DNA from: Pocillopora damicornis
Taxonomy: Eukaryota
Direction: 5' to 3'
Length of the DNA: 64,000 bases
Assembly (NCBI RefSeq): GCF_003704095.1
Contig: NW_020846461.1
Coordinates: forward strand, 186,001-250,000
The translations under genes were made by a program, and so were the position numbers. The notes below the pieces were generated by a model. It was not told the DNA's origin and did not search any database. It saw only the letters and a program-made list of their open reading frames with translations. How positions within the stretch are numbered: position 1 is the first letter of the stretch; the number at the start of each line of letters is the position of its first letter. This document shows, piece after piece, positions 18,101 to 31,309 of this stretch.

Positions 18101-18984
18101 GCAGTCGTTCTTAAGATCTTGCTTTTATTGAATGACTTTGAGACCAGCTCGTGTTAAAGTATCTTTTCTTAAATGAACACACATTGTACCTCCGGGATGC
18201 AACCTCGTTTCAATGTTTCTCTTCTACATGCCCACGCGGTCCCGCAGTAGGAAAGAACAGAGACCCTGGAAACTAGGTTACGCAGAATATTGAAATTATT
18301 ATCTTGTAAGCTATGATAACAATTTTATACAGAACAAGAGTTGACAGACACACGGGTAAAATATTCTTTTCTTTTAATGGAAAAGAGAATTAAACTACTC
18401 CAGCGATATATAATTTCGAAAAAATATATGTTTAGACTCAATTTTCATTGAAAAAAAAGTATTTGGTAAGTAGCCAGCTTTATTTTGATACGTCAGAAAT
18501 CAAACTGATCGCAAAAATGAATTGGCTTTGTCAAAGAAGGCAGTAACAAACTTAACGTATCGATAGAACTAACAAATGTTGTCTTATTTTTCCCGATGAA
18601 AGTAAGTAGGCATGATTATCATGTACTATAAATTGAAAACTAGAATTACAATCGACCAATCACAGAACAAAAAAAAATTGAAGCTTAAATAAGCTATAAT
18701 GCTCTATATACACCAGCTATTGATAAAAGCTGAATAGCAAAAATATAACTCAATTAATGAGCTTATGATACCAGAAAGTGATTTCTATTTCGCAACATAT
18801 GTACAGGAAAGTTACAAAATAAATCAATTCATGATGAAGCTATCTACAACATTCGACAAAATTCTTTGGGACTCTGCTGCATTGAAAGAATTTCGTGCAT
18901 AACCTTATTTGTGAAGAGAAACAAACATAGCTGAACAGAAAATGGGAAAAACGTAGAACTGAAGTTTCGTCATTGCCACGAGCC

Positions 18985-19055
18985 TAGTCTCATACCCAGA
19001 CCTTCCACGTCCATTTTAGTTACAATTAAACGGTAGGATCTGGGGACGAGATTAC
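18985..19055. repeat. Short palindromic MITE-like family (also ~2163-2251, 18201-18280, 37604-37678)
   Basis: Termini of the form A(A/G)(C/T)CTCGT(T/A)CCCAG ... CTGGG(A/T/G)ACGAG(A/G)TT. Confidence 0.55.
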
Positions 19056-19067
19056 TACGAACCAACT

Positions 19068-19218
19068 TGGGATCAATTTCAGTATTGAGCAAAGGTGCAC
19101 CTACCCCCTCCCCTCCCCCCTTCTAATTCAACATCAACCCTTCCTTGTTCTCAGTTCACTGTTGCTGAGTTAAGGGAGGGGTAGATGTGCAGTTGCTCGG
19201 TTATTACAATAATCCCCA
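19068..19218. mobile_element. TIR-bounded MITE-like element (half copy ~33085-33135)
   Basis: TTGGGATCAAT..GAGCAA..TGCACCTACCCC.TCCC ... GGGAGGGGTAGATGTGCAGTTGCTC..ATCCCCAA inverted arms. Confidence 0.55.
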
Positions 19219-20508
19219 ACTTCCTTAATTTTAACTGTGCAAAATGAGAGGAGATCCCGCAGAATACTGGCGAGTTTTTTGGATGTCAACATCTATAGAA
19301 GGTCTCTAGTAAAATTTAGCAACCTTTACACCAAATCACGTTTCTTCCAGAATTCGACTGACAAAGTAGTTGATTTAGAGTGGCTACTGAAAAATTTGCC
19401 AATGCAACGAGTTTAGTGATATCATGGCGGAATTCTGAAGTCGACAATGTAAAGAGATCTTTTGGTTTTTCAGTTCCAAAACAAGCCTTACCTTCTTGTA
19501 CAACAGTCTTGAAGACTGTGGTTTTACTCTCTGAAATCTACATTTTTTTGAAATGTTGTCGACATTCTTTACCCAATGCGATGGTGGATGTTTATGCGAA
19601 GCTACTGTTGATTTTTCGTTTACATTGCAGACTCCGTTTGACAGAGATCGGATCAACACCTTAAATTTTGGTAGAAACCTTTTTGAGAGCTATACAAGTA
19701 GATCCTTCACTTTCTTCAAAAGTTAAGCAAAGCAAATAAAAATAGTTTCCCGAGCAAAAGTATACACAAAACTAAATATTTTACCCTTGCAAAAATTCCA
19801 AAAATATACATGCGCTTTCATTTTTTTTTCTTTAAGCCTTTTGTTTTTGTGTTATCAGCGTCCATCTCGAGCGATGTAAAAAAGCAACGTAAAAAAAGCA
19901 GATAGAAACAGAAACTATCGGAGAGCAATTTCCTCTTCGGTAAAAGCGTCAATGCTTTCTCCAATTTCACTTTAACTTCTTCCTTGCCAGTTAAGTCCAG
20001 CCTTCGATATAATACTGCGTAATGGCACTCATTTTCTTGCAGAAATCAAGTTATCAAGTATTAAACCATTTGAGTAAAACACAAATGCACTGTTTTTGAT
20101 GAGCATTAATCCACCTAGAAGGTTTGAATCTCCCATGCGTCTTAAAGTCTGCAGTTTCTTTGGGTAAAGCTCGTTCAGCGTTTAAAGCAAAAGTGAATCT
20201 TTATCAAGCTTGAAGATTCTTAGAGTTGTCTACCAGAACTGTTTCAGCATGCATGGATTCATCAGCAAAATGTGACTCAAAACAAAGTCAAAAAGATTGA
20301 TCTTTCTGATGCAGAGAAAAATATACCGATAGCTCGAACATGGATCCTTCAATTGACGAAGCGCACATACTGGGCAATATCGCGCTTGTTGCCTGAAAGG
20401 TCTGATATTTTGGTCTTATGCAACTGATTAAACAGCAAATGCTCTTCTGCTTGCTAACCCTCCATTATCCGCTCCTCGCGACAAAATTGCGACGCTTCTG
20501 CGCCACTT

Positions 20509-23500
20509 TTAAGTTCTTTTCGTTTTTTCCGGTATAACTCCCTTCATTTGCAAAGACTCCTTATAATGCGTATGTAAATGGGTTTGCAAACTCCCAGACT
20601 GAGAGAACGCTTTGGAACATTGCCAGCATTTGTAGGGTTTCTCTCCTGTGTGAGTTCGCATGTGTCGCTTTAGGTCCGTGGAGCGTGCAAATGCCCTCGA
20701 GCACTCTTGACATTTGTACGGCTTTTCACCGGTGTGATTTCTCAAATGTCTTTGAAGGTCTGTAGAACGAACAAATGCTCGAGAACACTGCGTGCATTTG
20801 TAAGGACTCTCGCCTGAAATACAAAGGCAACCGTCAAACGATATTTTATCGCGACCAAATGTATTTAAGTATCACAACTTGATTCACCTTATGACCTGTA
20901 TCACCCCGCGTGCTTTTATTGAAAACTTTAAGATAAAAATCCCCGTTTGAGGGCCGCACGAGATGGAAAAAGCCGCAAGACCCCTCGAGATGCGAGCTGA
21001 TGAGGAAAAGAAGTTAAAGAAAGAGGGATAGTCATGTGATAGAAAGTTTCTTGACTGCGCTAATTCGGGCTGAAAGGGAAATTGTATGGCTCATGATCAT
21101 AACGCACGGATCTCGCTATGCTCGGTCCTTACGTTGATCCTCGAGCCAAATATTTCCCTTCCAGCCCTTCCACTAAGTCAATAAGTACATATCATTTACC
21201 TGTGTGTGATCTCATGTGCCTCCTCAAGTAACAAGGGTATTGAAATGCTTTACTGCAGTAAGAACACTTCCATGTGCGACCAGTCTTGTCAGGACAAACG
21301 TACTTAACATGACGCTCTAGGTAACTCTCGTATGCAAAGATCTTGCCGCATTTGTAGCACGTGTAACTCTCGTCGTCTTAAAATCAAGAGAAGAGAATCA
21401 TCAGTTTAAATGCTATCTACTCGTGAAAGTTTTCAAGAAATAACTTAACCAAGATGTTGATGATTGTTTTGAATCTGAAATCAAAGTGTTCAAACTCAGT
21501 TGAATCCCCTGCTCATTTTCGTCCGTTCCGTTCATCTTCATCGCCTTTTATCAATGTGGGCCAAAATTTTCCATGGCTAAGTCTACGATTTTGTCCATAA
21601 AGCTCCCTTCTGTCCCGAAAATGTTGGTCTAGGCCATTCTTTACTGAACTTACCCGATTCCACTCTGCTAAGCTTCTTCTCAAGATACCACCTGAACAAT
21701 TTTGTTCGTTTGTCTTCTTTCAAATGGACACTTTCTTGCAGGTATTTAGTAATCTCTATCTGCGACACGCCAGTCTCCTCGATCAGTTCTTTTTCCAAAG
21801 CCTTGTTGTTTTCCATAAAATCTCTGATTTCTCGTCCAATGATTTCTTCTTTGCCCCTAAATGTGACATATATCTCTTAGTTAAGTAGAATACCTCTGAT
21901 GGATAATTTTGATTGGACTGATTATCAACTTAAGTAAGTAAAATACTACTGCCGGATATTCGTCCGGCTTCCATCTTTAGCTTTGGAACGATAAAGAGAA
22001 ACGCCTCTTCCTTCGAAAAGGATGCTGGTCCGTCTTACGTCACCTTCCTCCCCTCCCTCCTTGTTTATTGATTACTTTTTCCCAACAATTTTGTGGTGCC
22101 GATTCATTTTCCCTAGATGTAAAATGAACTGTTACAGTATAGTGTCTTGCGCCTATAAACAATGCGGCTTCTCAGAGCTCGAATCCAGGTTTCCTAACCC
22201 AACGTCCGCGGGCTAACCTCTGAGCCATCGCGTTAATCGATAGGAGCTCCGCAAATTTGACAATTACCTAGTACAATTATAATTGAGGGGAAATCAGATC
22301 AATTCCATTGCGACACAACCAAAATCCTCCACCCCCAGCGGAGATAAATAATGACAGGTCCTTTGTGTATTTTGTTCACAAAATGTAGTTCAATTCCCTA
22401 AAAAAGATTTTTTTCTTTACTAATAAGGTTAATAAAAATTGTGATGAACTGGTGTTGTTTTTATCTAAAAGTCGTTTCTCAAAGAGGTTGGTGGCATTTA
22501 TCAAAAGGGTTTACTGGAAGAGGAGATGACATTGAGTGAGATCACAAGAAATTTTTTCAAAACTTACTGTAGCATTTTTTCCAGCTCCTCCTCAAGTTTG
22601 TGGAGTCTTGTTGAGTTGTTTTCATTCACGGGATTCATCGAACGTCTCATAGCTTTACTCTTTCTCTCCTTTAGATCCTCGCATTTTTCCTCGGCTGTTT
22701 CATTTTCCTCAACGTTGACCTGTTCTCTTTTTACACTTGTTAAACTGTCGCTTACACGTCGTTTAAACTTCGTGTCATGCACTTTACGAGGTTCCTTAAA
22801 AGTCTCGCTTTCGTTTAATTCAGTTTCATGCACGTCGCCATCATTGATCTTCCTGTGGTCTACAGTAACGTTCTGGGTACAAAACTCGTAGTCTGCCCGT
22901 CGTAAGCACAGCTCAGCAAGCGTGTGTAATCCGCGCGTGTCGAGCGCGGGAAAAGGCACCGGCTGATTCCTCCCGTTATTGGTGCGGGGAATGTAAGAGT
23001 CCGCGTTGGCTTCCAAATTGCACTGGATGGCCACATCGCCTGAAAAAAAAATTAAAGTTTTGAACACGAAACAACAGAAAAAATATGCACTTACACAACC
23101 CACAATTTCTCCATTCACTCTGCTTTGGAAACTCTTTTCGGTGGCCGGTTTACATCATCAACTCAGATGATAACACCAAATAATCTTGTATTGCTCCCCG
23201 CCGACGCAGCACCACAGTTTCTTTAGGAACTTACCCTTCTATTGAAAAAAAGTTTATCGAAATAAAGCAAAAGAAAGCTCTTACAAGTGCTCTGCCCTTC
23301 CATGATCTGTCCTCTCGGTGAATTATCTCAGTGTTCAAAGCCAAGAAAAGTAAATTTTTTGAGGGGGGTTTATCTTCAAAATGGAAATATCTTCGACGAT
23401 GAAGCTACACGGTCCTAATAACTTTGTACGTTTTACGTTCTGTGCGTTTACGCTGATCGCAAGTTCAAGTAAAGAGCTACCTCTCGCAAAATTTCATTTG

Positions 23501-25143
23501 AAAACTCCTTTGATTTTTCCTTCAAAAATTTGTTTTTCTCAAGGAAAACCTGTTAACTTAGAACCGTGGATGATTCAAAAGCTAAACCGGATCAATTCTA
23601 TAGGGTTCTGGATAAAACTCCACCAGAAACAGTCGAATCTATTTGTCACAGCCGGAAATCTCCAGTGAAATAAGATAACTTAAGATCTTTTTAAATAGAA
23701 AACAGCATACGAATGTTGTTTTGCTTGTTTTTTGCATTAATCTGAATTTATCATATGACACCATTTCCTACCTTACCTCAATTTTTTCCTCTTGGAGTGT
23801 TTGAGCGTGTGATGACGTGATGCGGGCTTAATTTTCACTGCATCGAATAACTCAATTAACTTCCGAGCTACACCGATATTTTTGAAATTTTTTGTTAAAA
23901 AATAGAGAGGAAATATTTGTAAAAATTTCAAGGTCCTGATCTGAGCATTCTCGTGATTTAAATTAATTCGATCTGTCCCATATAGTGAAGATAAAAAGAA
24001 AATAACACTTGTCTTGCCATTTGATAGTGTAACTTTGATCACCTAACCCAATAACAGAAAAATCTAAAAATTTGTTGCTGCGTAATTAATGGTTCTGTTT
24101 CGGAAGACATGTGAAGAAAAATTGGATTTTCCCTCGCACTTAGTCTCTCTCCTATCGCATTTCATATCTACTTCTAAGTAGTGTGAACAAAGTGTACCTA
24201 GCTCAATATTGCGCTGGATTCTCCTCGGAAAGAATCCTCTTTTTACTGACGAGAGTAATTTTATTGAACAGGTTTTAGCATTTTGGTCGGTTTTAACCAG
24301 TTTAGACAAGTTTACAGCCCGGAATCGCGTCGAATCTAGAGGCTAGGAAGTTTAGTATGGACTACTTGTGATTTTCGGACCGTGAAGATCTTCCCTAATT
24401 GCCATTTTGAAGTTCAGGACTTTACAGGTGGTCATGTCAACAAAGTTTACCAACACTTACCGGTGGCTGATGAGCCCGGATTTGTCTGTTTCTCTGCTTC
24501 CTCAGCGATGTCTGATAACTCCTCATTTTCTGACAAATAAAAGAGAATTTTTTTCTGCAAAATGAGTCCAGAAAGCTATTCTAGGAAGTTCGATTTAAAG
24601 ATTTTTAGAACACTAAACGCAAGGTTGAATTATTGATGCCAGGTAGTGATTTCACTACTTTTGCATACTCGCTCACTGAAGTAATCAGCGCTTGGAAAAT
24701 CTCAAAGAAATTTGAGCGCTCCGAAGAAAAAATCACGATAAAAAAAGTTTTTTTTCTTTAGCGTAAGAAACTAATTCAATATGAAAACCAATTGAATTTA
24801 ACTCCTTTCCACCAATTAGTCAGAAATACTAAATCTGACTGACTTTCGCTGACCCAGCGAACCGCGGACTGACGCCTCAACAGAAAAATTAAAATAACTC
24901 GGAGAAACTGTTATGAAAATGAACAAAATTGCACTAGAAATGATGGCATCGCACAAGCAAAAGCCTTCTTAATGAAAAGGCTCAGAGTTTCTTAGGTGAA
25001 AAACACGATTGACCTTTAATCTTGAGAAACCAAGTTGATCCCGGTGCGTTGGTATAACAGTACAGGTACTTACCCTGGTGTATATCCTCGGCTAACTTCC
25101 TCTTGTTGCGAGAGGCTTTTTTCACAAGGAAGGATTTTGGCAT
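20509..25143 (-). CDS. SNAG-domain transcription factor with HNF1/HMBOX1-type POU-like domain and five zinc fingers (1 C2HC + 4 C2H2)
   Basis: Exons 25143-25074, 24529-24461, 23039-22568, 21856-21654, 21376-21200, 20813-20509 splice in frame with no stops. N-terminus is MPKSFLVKK (SNAG). Central segment [45 protein letters not shown]...[13 protein letters not shown]. Zinc fingers carry TGEKPY linkers. Confidence 0.88.
21028..21190. repeat. Long imperfect hairpin repeat element (similar architecture at ~32325-32670 and 53908-54198)
   Basis: Inverted arms TTGACT..GGGCTGAAAGGGAAAT..TGGCTC / GAGCCAAATATTTCCCTTCCAGCCC..AGTCAA around a short centre. Confidence 0.6.
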
Positions 25144-27796
25144 ATCCTCTAGACTCGGACGCGTTCTTTCTCTTCAAACCAACTCCACTGCTCATCGAGC
25201 TTTAAGGCAACTTAAGGAGGAATCCCTCCCTCCTTGCCTCAAATGACGTTATCAACCGATTAGCCCTGTCTCCATTTGCGTCTCTGAGACTCACAAACCC
25301 CCATCAGGTATCACCATTAACAACGCGTAACTGATATCCTTACGATTTGCGCACGCGCAGGAGCAATCTGGCGTTTCAAAATAAACCTGGAAGTGCGCGC
25401 TCAGATTACAGCTTGCAAACGTCTTCTAAAACTTGATCGAAAATTCTAATTCTAACCGTGGTAGTATGTGATGAAGATAACTCTCCACAATTTTCGTGAC
25501 AATCGACAGTGATGGTAAAATGTTGATGTTACACCGCTAGCTGTTTGGAGAAGTTTCGGTCCATCTGACCAAGCGGATTGAATAAGTTAGCAATTACGTC
25601 ACAACCAGGTGTACGGTTAGGTAATAAAATTGACTGTCTTACGGTTAGAGTCATGCTCCCAGATTAACCGACTCTTAAATTTCAATTTCTCACGATTGGT
25701 GCCATCCATCCCCTTTTTATTTTAGTCAGTATACATTTTTTTTTAAAAAAATTTGAATCGGCTTCCTGCCGACGTCCCTGCCAGGTCCGCTAACGTGCGG
25801 ATATCTCGATATTTACCGGTGTGATACTTGTTATTGGCCGGTTCTTGAATATCCCGCGCTCGACCCGTTTTTAGCAGTTGTTACGGTGTCGAGCGGCGAG
25901 CCAGTGAGTAAACTTACAGGTGGCCGACAGTAACATGTGTAAACAGCGACTAGGCCTCGTGTGTTCAGTGTGATAAGGTCAGAATAAATTGAACAACACT
26001 AGCAGAGATCAATGTCAGCGTGGGTTGAGTGTCTATTCTACATGGATGAAATCACTGTCGAAATTCCCTCTTGTTTTAGAGATAATTTATCGAACTTTTC
26101 GTTAATCAAGATTGGGAAAGAACGCGATTGATTTTTGACGTAAGATGATCTGTTAATCTCCGACGTTTCTTCAATGCATGGTGCGTCTTTCAGCTGGAAG
26201 TGTTGTTAATAGCACAAGCGACTTTTTGCCTTCCCAGTGTATGGCTATTTTCTGCTATAGATAGTTTGGTTGAACACAAAGTTTTAAAGCTAAACACGAA
26301 GTTAATTTTGTATTTTAACCAGTTGCACTATTAAGCAGTGTTATGGAGCAAGATATCGTGTCAGAAACTAAGATCATTCTAACTTCTTTCAGAAACTTTT
26401 GTGCATGTGACGAATTCCAATCAATATAGTCACGATGGGTGAAATTCATACTAAAATCAAAGCCGTCTTAAAGTTTACATAACGAGCTTAGTTACTGACC
26501 CTGGATTTACTGAATGAATTAAAAATGCTGACAACTTTAAGAATTTAGATGACAAAGGTTAGCTGCCGATAAACCATTGCGCATCAAGAAGATTCTGTCT
26601 CCATGAAAACGTTAATTGAACATTTGATTGTAGAGGCAAGAATTCAATGCTCTCCTGGGTCTGTGCGGAAACGTTTTTGAAATCTTAAAGTGAGTTTTGT
26701 TTCAAGAACAATTTAAATTGCTTCCTCATATTTATTGCACTTCGTAAGAGATATATTTGAATCAAGCAGGTCATATGCATTAACAGGTTGCGTGTTAGAA
26801 TTGAACGCGCATCGTCACTTGCAACACTGAGCTTTCCCTTTTCAACTATAGAACTTGAAAATAATTTATGTGTCTACAAAATTGGAAACTTTCACCTCTA
26901 ATTTCAAGCTTAGATTTGGAAATTACGTCCAAATTCTTAGAAAAGAAAAATTCACTGTTTTCCCAAAACAATCCAAATAAACAATTTTGGTCTCAAAGTT
27001 TATCGATGAGCATTCAGGTAATTAGGAAATAGAGAGAATGTTGTCCAATGCAGCTTCTCGGCTCAAACTTTCAGCGTTTATTCTCAATTAAGAAAACTTT
27101 GTTTTTACGATTTTCAGCTATCCACTTAAAGGAAAACCTTCCAGAGGATGATTCTTGAGACGTCATTTAAATCTCCGTGTTTAGTTTCTAATTGTGAATT
27201 GTTTTTTTAAGGCGAGATGACCGTATGATTAGGCAGTCAATGATCCGTGATAAATAGAAAATTAGTGGGAATGTTTTCCACGAATTTGTCTTTAGCAACA
27301 CTTAAATAATCTATTGGTACCTAACTAATTGGAGAAGCGTTGCAGCAGCGTTGAATGGCTCCACCACTCTGTGCTTTAATTAGCCTCTGAATGACTGAGG
27401 GAAACCGGCTTTGATTTGCCACCAACAACTTAGAACTATTTTGTAATGCCCCAAAAAAGAAGCAAATTTTTGACGAATTGTTTCGGTTGTTGTGTTAATA
27501 GTTTTCTTCAAAATGGAACATAAGGGAGAAAAAGAAAACCGACGGATTTGTGCGAAATAACTGAAATAAACCATGTTCATATCAAGCAAAACAAATGGTA
27601 ATGGTCAGTCAAATGAAAATAAAAAATTGCGTGTAGCTGGTACCCGCTTAAAAATGATACACTCATGCGCAGTGGCCTCAGCGATTTTTTCACGTTGCTC
27701 CTTGCACAAAGGAAACGAAATTAGCTTACAAAGGATAAATGGAAAGCAAACTCTTCTTCAACGTTTTAATTGACTTCGTACTGGATCTCAAAACAA

Positions 27797-29575
27797 ATGC
27801 TTCATGAGGAAGCGGGCGATGTTGAATTGCACATGGCCTCTTATCGCTTCTGCCATCGTCTTTGTTTTTTTGGTCTAATAACGTTCTCTCTCTGTTCCGT
27901 TGTGTTCATCATGTCGAGAGGTAAGCACGGCGAAAGGATCTTCTTGCTAAGGGGTATTTACTTTCCACGATCTATAAACATCCATATTTTGCTTGGAAGA
28001 TAATCGTGAAGACCCCGTGCGTCGAGATGATCGCTTATTAAACATTCATTGAAGCGTAAAACAAATTTATTAACATGCTTCTTAAAGTGGCCCCTGAAGT
28101 CGTGCGTTCGATCGAGAGCCATCAGCACTGTCATTGAAATAGTAAACATATCAAAGCTGTCCTTTGCTTATCAACTCAGATTACAAAACTTAACTGTAAA
28201 AGAATCATTGCTTTAAGGGTATTGCACAGTACATTGGGTCGTTGAGATTTCCGGGTTCAAGCCCAGGACGGGTCGTTGAGTTGTGTCCCTGGAAAAAAAA
28301 GAAAAAAAAAACTCCAACCAGGGAGAATAGTTGGTAAGGGGGGAGTAAAATTATTCCTGGTCGCTTATTTTATGTCACGTAAAATGTTCTTGCCTAAGCA
28401 AGATTTGGCTTGAGCTTAGAATTGTCTCGATATGCCCTTACTAATCTCTTCTTTCGTTAGTGCCACTAAAAATATATTTTTGTCCTTTTAATGCTGAGTT
28501 TGATTCGAAATTCTCTTTAATAAAAGTAACAATTATACTTTTGATAGGTTATTTGTCCTTCTTCGTCAGCCGAGGATTTGAAATCGTCGAAGAGGAAAGT
28601 AATTCGATCGAACGAAAACGCGAACTGCCCATCATCAACAACCACAGAGGAAACTTCAGTAAAAGAACTTGTAAAGAAGGGGATTTTGAAGATATCTTAT
28701 TAGTTATTGTCTTTGTGGAAATCTTCTATGATTCCATTCCGTTACTGGAGCGACTTTACAGACATCGTTTTCCACATATAGTTTATTGCGGACCTACAAA
28801 ACCACCTGGAGACCAAGAGTACAAGATGATCGTGGTATCTATGCTTCACGGAGTCACAGCTTACGATTGTCTGAGCACTGCAATCAGAACACAACCTCAA
28901 TTTACGGGTTATTTGTTTATTAGAAGTGATTTGTTTTTAAATTTTTGGAGCATTTCAAATTTGAATAGATCTAGGATATGGGAAAGCTCTGAACAGCTTG
29001 GTTACCAGGTCATGTTTGAGCAACCGCGCGATTCCTGGATCTGGTGGTACACGCCATGGGGGCTAAAAGCTTGTGAGGAGGCCTATAAAGACCTTATTTT
29101 CCTGAATGACGCGCAGAAGCGTGCAATAATTGATAGCAAAGGGCAAGAGGAAAGTTCGTGGGACGTGGAAAACTCATTAAACGCTTTGCTATGGAATGGG
29201 CGTGGCTTAAACATGTGCTATCGAGGCTTTTCAAACCTATTTTATATTCCTTCAGAACAGGCCACTGCTTTTGAAAAACTGTCCACTGTTTTTCAAAAGC
29301 ATCAGGTATATATGGAAATAGCAGTTCCCACCATGATTAAAATGCTCGATCTGTCCGAAAAATCAGAGAAAATATCAGGAGTAGATATTGGATTTATTTA
29401 CGGGGAGGAGCGCGCACAAAACGACGGTAGTTTATTTTGGCGATATATCTCGCGCAACATAAGTTATATTAGACCTGTTGTGCTAACGCGTAAATACTCT
29501 GCAGAAAAAAACTCAGTCGGGATGGTGGAAGTGTTGTTAAATCGATTTAACCATACAAACTGTTCAAATAGCTAG
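27797..29575 (+). CDS. Type II membrane protein resembling the C-terminal domain of STELLO/DUF288 putative glycosyltransferases
   Basis: Exon 1 27797 (or 27833)-27920 with TM LCFFGLITFSLCSVVFIM; exon 2 28548-29575 in phase. DILLVIVF..IPLLERLY..F.HIVYCG, YDCL..AI, GYLF...D..LNFW and EIAVPT match this family from memory. Confidence 0.7.
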
Positions 29576-30400: not shown

Positions 30401-31309
30401 TTATGTTCCAAGAGAGGAAGACTGGTGACCAATGTGATGAAAAAGTTCCTTCTCATACATGTTCTTCTTATCTTTAAGCATTGATTTTCCTCCTCTCGAA
30501 GCGTAGTAACTATATAACAACCAGTCGCAAGGCATTTCAAAGTAAAATTTCTCGAGATAACGACCCAGAAGTCGAAGATTTTCGTCGTGGAAAAGCTTTC
30601 CTATAAACCCCCACATGCTGAAATTCAACACTTCCCACGTAACATTTCCTCTTTGATCAATAAATTTTCGTATTTGACTCAAAGTGTTGGGCTCAGTTGT
30701 GACATCATCTTCAAGATGCAAGTAGTAATTTGCAAGGCCATGACTGTAATAAAACATAAACACGTAATCCATGCTCTGTTTTGAACGCCAGTACATTCTG
30801 TCAGGCCCGTCGCCAAGAGTAGACGGAATTCCTTTCAAGCGAGGATAGAACGAGGGAGGAGCCGAAATTACATGAATTAAATTCATCTCCATGTATTTAC
30901 TAAAGTTTTCTAATAGTTTCTTTTTGACGATCGCGCGGGCTGATTCTTCGGTGTCGGCGAGAAAAACAACAATTAAGATGTTTTTAAGGTCATCCTCCGA
31001 AACATTACTCGTCAAGAGCGAGTTTAAAGTTGCAGTCAAATAACTTTCCGTCTTGTTCTTGTAAGTTCTTGCGACAGTTGGAATTCCAATGGTTAGAAAA
31101 ACTAAAACAAAAAGATTAGAAAATAATTGGCAAAGTTACATTTGATTAAATAAACCGCAATAAGGGATATAATCGTGATGCCTTCCATTTTGTACCTTTC
31201 CTCGTAAGTGGTTTTCCCAGCTCCCTCACACTTGTCTTCGTGATGATCTCCCCGTTTGGTGAACAAGACAAAACGTCCTTCACATTACAGCTTGCCTTAC
31301 AACTCATAC
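30401..31309 (-). CDS. MGAT4C-like alpha-1,3-mannosyl-glycoprotein 4-beta-GlcNAc transferase (GT54), catalytic domain; 5' TM exon unresolved
   Basis: Exons 31309-31196 and 31101-30401. FLTIGIPTV.R, YL..TL.SL, WRSKQSMDY, YYLHLEDDV, GFIGKLFH, PCDWL, LFHHIG.SS. Confidence 0.88.

Follow-up and report, generated by a model that had tools for sequence, protein, structure and literature searches.

What role is left to a POU-specific domain of HNF1 type, so far treated as an appendage of the homeodomain, in a protein where zinc fingers stand in the homeodomain's place? The question is raised by a six-exon gene on the minus strand of a 64,000-nucleotide (nt) stretch of the genome of the coral Pocillopora damicornis (contig NW_020846461.1, positions 186,001 to 250,000; the whole stretch is called the window here, and coordinates are counted from its first letter). 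The gene (window 25143-20509) joins, in this order, a SNAG motif, a disordered region with one conserved helix, a five-helix domain of HNF1 type, a linker of about 10 residues, and five zinc fingers. These represent three old and well-studied modules whose combination was not found in the literature searched. We infer that the product is a 431-amino acid nuclear factor of a family that is so far cnidarian only, and that is known as a set of database predictions with generic names and is undescribed as a family. Taken jointly, the evidence makes it probable that the protein is a SNAG-tagged, finger-directed repressor carrying an auxiliary HNF1-like domain, and that the family was assembled in the stem cnidarian.

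Gene structure and transcript

The coding exons measure 70, 69, 472, 203, 177, and 305 nt, are bordered by canonical GT/AG sites in consistent phases, and add up to 1,296 nt, that is, 431 codons and a stop. The elements of the gene are the following:

18104-25563, minus strand: transcript unit, from mRNA contig L006, about 4.1 kb when spliced
25074-25563, minus strand: exon 1, with a 420-nt 5' untranslated region (5'UTR) and the first 70 coding nt
25143-25074, minus strand: coding part of exon 1, with the ATG at 25143
25117-25143, minus strand: SNAG motif MPKSFLVKK, residues 1-9, from the translation and the family alignment
24461-24529, minus strand: exon 2, an acidic linker, phase 1 at both ends
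22568-23039, minus strand: exon 3, largely disordered, its last 15 or so codons forming helix 1 of the HNF1-like domain
22882-22944, minus strand: conserved helical motif, from the family alignment and a predicted helix (residues 82-102; predicted local distance difference test score, pLDDT, about 70)
21654-21856, minus strand: exon 4, 203 nt, entered in phase 2 and left in phase 1; encodes helices 2-5 of the HNF1-type POU-specific-like domain
21200-21376, minus strand: exon 5, finger 1 (C2HC, C-x2-C-x12-H-x4-C) and finger 2 (C2H2)
20509-20813, minus strand: coding part of exon 6, fingers 3-5, a short basic tail, and the stop TAA at 20511-20509
18104-20508, minus strand: 3'UTR, unspliced, about 2.4 kb, from mRNA contig L006
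18124-18129, minus strand: poly(A) signal AATAAA; the cleavage site at 18104 lies 20 nt beyond its last base

An assembled mRNA contig (L006) spans all five junctions (25074/24529, 24461/23039, 22568/21856, 21654/21376, and 21200/20813). Its 5' end maps to 25563, which leaves the 5'UTR free of introns, and beyond 18104 it continues as a run of A. In the stretches compared it differs from the window at four positions, all of them synonymous, and is therefore independent of this assembly and not a copy of it. A first-pass annotation, made from the letters of the window alone, had proposed that two short exons encoding MPKSFLVKK join the rest of the gene in phase, and had named the junctions 25074/24529, 24461/23039, and 21654/21376 as the ones to look for in RNA. 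All three are read through in L006. Furthermore, the central peptide quoted in that annotation is exactly the product of the end of exon 3 and exon 4, and every coordinate and peptide it gave is correct.

The uninterrupted 1,296-nt open reading frame (ORF), with its exact 431-amino acid translation, is present in 16 contigs shorter than 5 kb (14 of them of 2-5 kb); eight of these, the ones listed, are Logan assemblies made from sequencing runs. The share of words sampled from 20400-25300 that RNA runs of several studies contained was 0.28-0.37, and coding exons account for about 26% of this stretch. A contig of 2.5 kb (L004, JGI sample 3300008033), derived from a related coral, follows the order of the six exons and has no intron at all. 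Its frame shifts at a run of seven A (L004 1174-1180), where the window reads GAGAAGAAGCTT; the change is probably one extra A that arose by sequencing or assembly error. A profile search of the genome returned only two loci with the Pfam HNF-1_N domain, the present gene and, on contig C542, the canonical HNF1. The gene is single-copy and expressed in Pocillopora damicornis.

An upstream ATG at 25195 (minus strand), in weak context and in another frame, opens a short reading frame (MSSGVGLKRK…) that overlaps the main ATG (window 25070-25195). The same start is found in the related-coral transcript L004 (MRSGVGLKR…, about L004 335-382); the start of the upstream frame is thus conserved, and the frame may regulate translation.

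The central domain

Exon 4 taken alone matches HNF-1_N (PF04814) with 39.8 bits against a gathering cut-off of 29.7 (E 8.3e-10, profile positions 121-174 of 175). The relatives from Oculina (41.2), Dendronephthya (45.4), EukProt Seg1053.2 (52.5), and Hydra (32.7) all exceed the cut-off, while the Clytia member, at 22.4, falls below it. In full-length relatives the match reaches back to about profile position 50-90; the matches in family members begin at position 50 at least, and the dimerisation segment of HNF1 was not found in them. When exon 4 was compared with PDB sequences at E up to 10, the matches were confined to HNF1A (1ic8, 8pi7) and HNF1B (2h8r), along 55 ungapped residues.

The fold was predicted with AlphaFold2 for the N-terminal 272 residues of a related coral's protein (P0007, 90% identical to the exon-4 protein of the window), using an alignment of 17 rows. 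The model contains helices at 185-204, 207-220, 222-232, 236-245, and 251-269, with a pLDDT of 80-88, and the first of these crosses the junction between exons 3 and 4. In a Foldseek search of the PDB, the top ten matches were all DNA-binding domains of HNF1A or HNF1B (probability 1.00, root-mean-square deviation 1.2-2.9 Å over 71-91 columns). A 50-fold gap in E-value separates them from the next match, a generic fold of lambda-repressor type with E of about 0.5.

Gene structure leads to the same place. The POU-like exon of coral HNF1 (L001 1503-1702), with borders taken from a reading of the genomic sequence, is 200 nt long, has a phase-2 acceptor one codon before MDPW, and has a phase-1 donor 10 residues past the conserved Trp. 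Exon 4, of 203 nt, is entered by a phase-2 intron at the aligned codon (between MLQ and GKEE) and left in phase 1, 11 residues past the Trp. The two exons align without gaps at 27% identity and 63% positives. Exon 2 of human HNF1A (c.327-526), we presume, is also 200 nt long and has the same phases. Because the profile, the PDB sequence match, the predicted fold, and the position and phases of the introns concur, the central domain is, as judged from sequence and modelled structure, homologous to that of HNF1 at the level of the exon and not a look-alike. The first-pass annotation had recognised an HNF1/HMBOX1-type pattern in this segment and had suggested a structural comparison; the ten best Foldseek matches and the intron frame shared with coral HNF1 bear it out.

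The disordered region that precedes the domain holds the conserved helix at 22882-22944, in which a Tyr-Glu pair is nearly invariant in all 17 aligned members of the family. In medusozoans this motif is extended to YE-x-EKSYWF. By eye, it shows a loose resemblance to the 'Sp box' of Sp/NET finger proteins.

The SNAG motif and the zinc fingers

The protein begins with MPKSFLVKK, at the first ATG of the ORF carried by all 16 mRNA contigs. A start of the form MP(K/R)SFL(V/L/M)(K/R) is shared by 16 of the 17 members in the alignment, anthozoan as well as medusozoan, and the remaining member has a plainly mispredicted start. In these columns S is present in every member, and M, P, F, and L in at least 90% of them. 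The SNAG motif that had been read at residue 1, spliced to the remainder of the protein, is consequently upheld by both the mRNA contigs and the family.

At the other end, the zf-C2H2 profile matches five stretches, of which exon 5 holds two and exon 6 three. Finger 1 is of the C2HC kind (C-x2-C-x12-H-x4-C), and fingers 2-5 are classical C2H2 fingers. The first-pass annotation had seen a possible resemblance of finger 1 to the first finger of PRDM14. Between the second Cys of finger 1 and the final His of finger 5, conservation in Anthozoa and Medusozoa reaches at least 90% in most columns, and the conserved recognition helices include RSTDLQR in finger 3, RSTDLKR in finger 4, and QSGSLQT in finger 5. 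As a rule of thumb of the finger code, Arg at positions -1 and +6 pairs with G, and Asp at +3 with C. A homeobox match was obtained neither in any exon (E up to 10) nor in the five full-length relatives that were scanned (E up to 0.001). The ORF of the mRNA stops 15 residues past finger 5 and is followed by an unspliced 3'UTR. Thus, as the first-pass annotation had it, five fingers, the first of them C2HC, sit where a homeodomain would be expected, and none was seen in the exons, the mRNA, or the five relatives.

A family spread across Cnidaria

Exon 4 (a 67-residue query) was compared exhaustively, by HMMER, with 1.84 billion representative proteins; the 21 matches were family members or fragments of them save for one vertebrate HNF1B-like fragment. 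Two word-seeded searches of 5.8 billion clusters, in which the HNF1-like domain and fingers 1-2 of an octocoral and a hydrozoan member served as queries, covered lengths of 141-775 residues. Both returned the same closed set, composed of cnidarian proteins only (plus transcript contigs without a species name). Anthozoa is represented in it by Pocillopora, Orbicella, Oculina, Montipora, Dendronephthya, Paramuricea, and Actinia; further members come from Hydra vulgaris (XP_002157355), Clytia hemisphaerica (XP_066924228), Sanderia malayensis, and EukProt Seg1053.2 ('GoldUCD'). The same order of parts is seen in stony corals, octocorals, a sea anemone, Hydra, Clytia, and jellyfish. Since this order is identical in 16 other cnidarian proteins, a chance origin of the architecture is excluded.

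The suggestion that the architecture might be lineage-specific, and that orthologues should be sought widely, therefore led to a set confined to Cnidaria in these searches, with a scope that is phylum-wide and not specific to corals. No member from Nematostella was returned by the HMMER or word-seeded searches. The ORF downstream of the exon in the relative P0011 is not a finger exon. In 8.4 million papers and preprints, searched by architecture, Pfam accession, and protein accessions, we found no published description, in agreement with the first-pass annotation, to which no described family of this architecture was known. The Clytia protein 'ZnfO' (PMC4169000) was considered and could not be linked to the SNAG–HNF1-like–zinc-finger family.

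DNA contacts of the HNF1-like domain

The POU-specific domain of HNF-1A contacts DNA through Gln130, Arg131, Gln141, Ser142, His143, Asn149, and Lys158; bases are touched by Gln141 and Ser142, and the interface is mainly positive (PMC11382887). In the alignment to PDB HNF1A, the coral residues at these seven positions are Glu, Lys, Gln, Ile, Glu, Gln, and Lys. Three of the seven contacts are thus lost, two positions having become acidic and the base-reading Ser being gone. Over the 55 aligned residues the coral domain has 12 basic and 12 acidic residues (net 0), compared with 9 basic and 2 acidic residues in HNF1A (net +7). The segment equivalent to helix alpha-4 varies freely and is acidic across the family (…SQIEITKYL, …TIVDASRFL, …TEESINVYI, …DKNEIKAFI), including its octocoral and medusozoan members, while the fingers are invariant. 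What the family keeps is the hydrophobic core, an Asn-Asn pair, and the final W-Y-L-x-K. The coral's own HNF1, in contrast, has NQSHLSQHL exactly as in human.

These patterns suggest that the fold of the domain is under selection, though not as a base reader in the manner of HNF1, and that a protein-contact or auxiliary role beside finger 1 is more likely than that of a second sequence reader. The first-pass annotation had spoken of two types of DNA-binding module. An HNF1-type fold and fingers are both present, but the standing of the former as a DNA-binding module is doubtful because three of seven contact residues and the net positive charge have been lost. The domain persists without a homeodomain over the Anthozoa-Medusozoa split, with its DNA-reading residues changed, and this bears on the role that the fold has of its own.

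Proposed mechanism and origin

By analogy with known SNAG factors, the protein is most likely a sequence-specific repressor in which the fingers read DNA and the SNAG motif recruits LSD1-CoREST. Fingers 2-5, which are almost invariant from corals to hydrozoans, including the base-reading helix positions, would bind a conserved DNA site. The SNAG motif would insert into LSD1 and bring in the CoREST-LSD1-HDAC complex, leading to repression of the targets. SNAG mediates the binding of LSD1/CoREST/HDAC in Insm1 (PMC9020782), and purification from Nematostella has shown that a cnidarian possesses a CoREST-Lsd1-HDAC complex (PMC9400249). The HNF1-like domain, which has kept its fold and not its DNA-reading surface, would act as an auxiliary or protein-contact module held beside finger 1. 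Being single-copy and phylum-wide, with near-invariant fingers and a SNAG motif, the gene is a strong candidate for an important node in cnidarian development or cell-type specification.

As to origin, the gene would have arisen in the stem cnidarian when the 5' portion of an HNF-class gene, ending in the phase-1 intron that follows the POU-like exon, was fused to zinc-finger exons of phase 1. These would have replaced the homeobox exons before the Anthozoa-Medusozoa split. The junction is placed within that intron on three concordant grounds: exon 4 is framed by phases 2 and 1, exon 3 ends with a helix of HNF1 type, and the first finger exon starts in phase 1. The intron phases held in common would make the gene an unusually clean record of the assembly of a transcription factor from exons of two genes.

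Several points weigh against this reading or soften it. Stony corals retain a Lys (for Arg131), Gln141, and Lys158, so that some backbone or base contact is possible. The linker of about 10 residues between the HNF1-like domain and finger 1 is short and conserved in length, and would suit a DNA-bound arrangement. Binding of the protein to LSD1 and to DNA is predicted from its motifs, and the core of GCG-GCG type that fingers 3-4 would specify follows from a rule of thumb. In an LSD1 profile search of this genome, SWIRM matches lie on contigs C1417 and C1131, and no amine-oxidase match lies on those contigs among the matches listed. Finally, no member outside Cnidaria came from our searches, the sensitivity of which is limited; the evidence for restriction to the phylum is consequently good and not conclusive.

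Alternative readings

A tentative variant is that the HNF1-type POU-specific domain, once freed from the homeodomain, has been put to a new use, be it dimerisation, contact with a partner, or DNA binding of a new kind, beside fingers armed with a SNAG motif in a regulator peculiar to the phylum. If true, the fingers, near-invariant over the Anthozoa-Medusozoa split, would mark a core gene-regulatory switch of cnidarians, perhaps one for a cell lineage that only cnidarians have, comparable to ZNF845 in stinging cells.

The rival explanation that survives best, although we consider it unlikely, is that the protein is a bipartite DNA reader, in which the HNF1-like domain still binds DNA next to finger 1, much as HNF1 uses its POU-specific domain next to the homeodomain, and thereby lengthens or refines the site that the fingers recognise. 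The conserved fold, the three residues retained in stony corals, and the short, constant linker to finger 1 all speak in its favour. It has to contend with the replacement of Ser142, which reads a base, by Ile, and of His143 and Gln130 by Glu, as well as with the loss of the +7 net charge. It also sits poorly with an alpha-4 equivalent that is free to vary, and is acidic in octocorals and medusozoans, next to fingers that do not vary, and with the contrast offered by the coral's own HNF1, where NQSHLSQHL is fully kept.

It is distinctly improbable that the protein works independently of LSD1, its N-terminus serving turnover or localisation and the protein activating transcription or acting architecturally. 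That LSD1 binding is a prediction, and that SWIRM and amine-oxidase matches do not share contigs among the matches listed, leaves this reading some room. However, the form M-P-(K/R)-S-F-L-(V/L/M)-(K/R) stands at residue 1 in 16 of 17 members, the same motif recruits LSD1/CoREST/HDAC in Insm1 (PMC9020782), and cnidarians possess the complex (PMC9400249). These facts argue for the repressor with an LSD1-recruiting SNAG motif.

Comparison with known families

With the HNF class (HNF1A, HNF1B, and HMBOX1) the coral gene shares the atypical five-helix POU-specific-like domain (Pfam HNF-1_N), not otherwise known outside homeobox proteins of the HNF1/HMBOX1 type, for which HNF1A and HNF1B are the best structural matches, and with HNF1 it shares the intron position, the phases, and nearly the length of the main domain exon. 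It differs from the class in the absence of a homeodomain, the place of the homeobox being taken by zinc fingers. From HNF1 it differs in lacking the dimerisation segment, in having lost three of seven DNA contacts and carrying a net charge of 0 where HNF1A has +7, and in an identity of only 27% to the HNF1 exon of its own genome.

Snail/Scratch, Gfi1/1b, and Insm1 resemble the coral protein in having MP(R/K)SFLV(K/R) at residue 1, a disordered middle, and a C-terminal C2H2 array, and by analogy the expected outcome is likewise recruitment of LSD1-CoREST-HDAC to sites read by the fingers. Unlike them, the coral gene has an extra folded domain of HNF1 type right before the fingers, and it has five fingers, the first of them C2HC, in a family found in cnidarians only. 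The common plan invites the reading that the gene belongs, as a diverged orthologue, to one of the known bilaterian SNAG finger families (Gfi, Insm, or Snail/Scratch) and gained an HNF1-like exon, and early events in the evolution of C2H2 fingers are difficult to trace. We regard this reading as even less probable than an LSD1-independent function. No orthology of the fingers to Snail/Scratch, Gfi, or Insm was detected in a comparison made by domain- and finger-seeded searches and a PDB profile search, without a tree. Both seeded searches gave the closed cnidarian set, and the family profile matched only generic finger proteins in the PDB, with SNAI1 far down the list. A protein atlas search likewise returned generic finger clusters only, below threshold. 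Furthermore, the number of fingers and the C2HC first finger are unlike those of Nematostella Insm1, which has six fingers (PMC9020782), and of ZNF845 and GFI1B, which have six each (PMC9172639).

ZNF845 is a cnidarian-specific, shuffled finger factor of Nematostella and Hydra (PMC9172639), and its identity with the coral gene was considered and rejected. It has six tandem fingers and no accessory domain (PMC9172639), compared with five fingers and an HNF1-like domain. The accessions differ as well: Hydra ZNF845 is XP_002158383, and the Hydra member of the present family is XP_002157355 / XP_065644540 ('zinc finger protein 26').

Database annotation

The gene is already annotated by a correct RefSeq model of 431 residues under a generic name: XP_027051377.1, 'zinc finger protein 420-like isoform X1 [Pocillopora damicornis]', matches the translation of our six exons residue for residue, and the P. 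verrucosa protein XP_058956334.1 differs from it at one residue. The label 'isoform X1' implies a second isoform. The GenBank model RMX39790.1 (pdam_00007138, 360 amino acids) is wrong at both ends. It begins at the upstream ATG at 25195 in the other frame, adds a spurious exon, and ends after finger 2. An annotation or assembly artefact, or a pseudogene, is the one rival to which the faulty GenBank model lends some colour, and it is practically out of the question given the 16 contigs with an intact ORF, the poly(A) run at the end of L006, the intact orthologues across the phylum, and the agreement of the RefSeq model with our reading.

All members of the family bear misleading generic names of the form 'ZNF420/26/333/667-like'. 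In Actinia tenebrosa, the model XP_031570901.1 (P0034) lacks the first two thirds of the HNF1-like domain. A genomic fragment close to the Actinia protein (P0010) holds the whole HNF1-like exon, and the RefSeq model of Actinia therefore probably skips part of that exon.

Neighbouring genes

Upstream of the gene in the window lies an exon of an MGAT4-type glycosyltransferase (30404-31039, minus strand; Pfam MGAT4_cons, 184 bits). Between the two is an open frame of 371 codons (28460-29575, plus strand), which has no Pfam match. The locus of the octocoral orthologue (L005 12956-15859) also has an MGAT4_cons neighbour, on the opposite side and in the opposite orientation. The shared neighbour is either a remnant of linkage or a product of chance.

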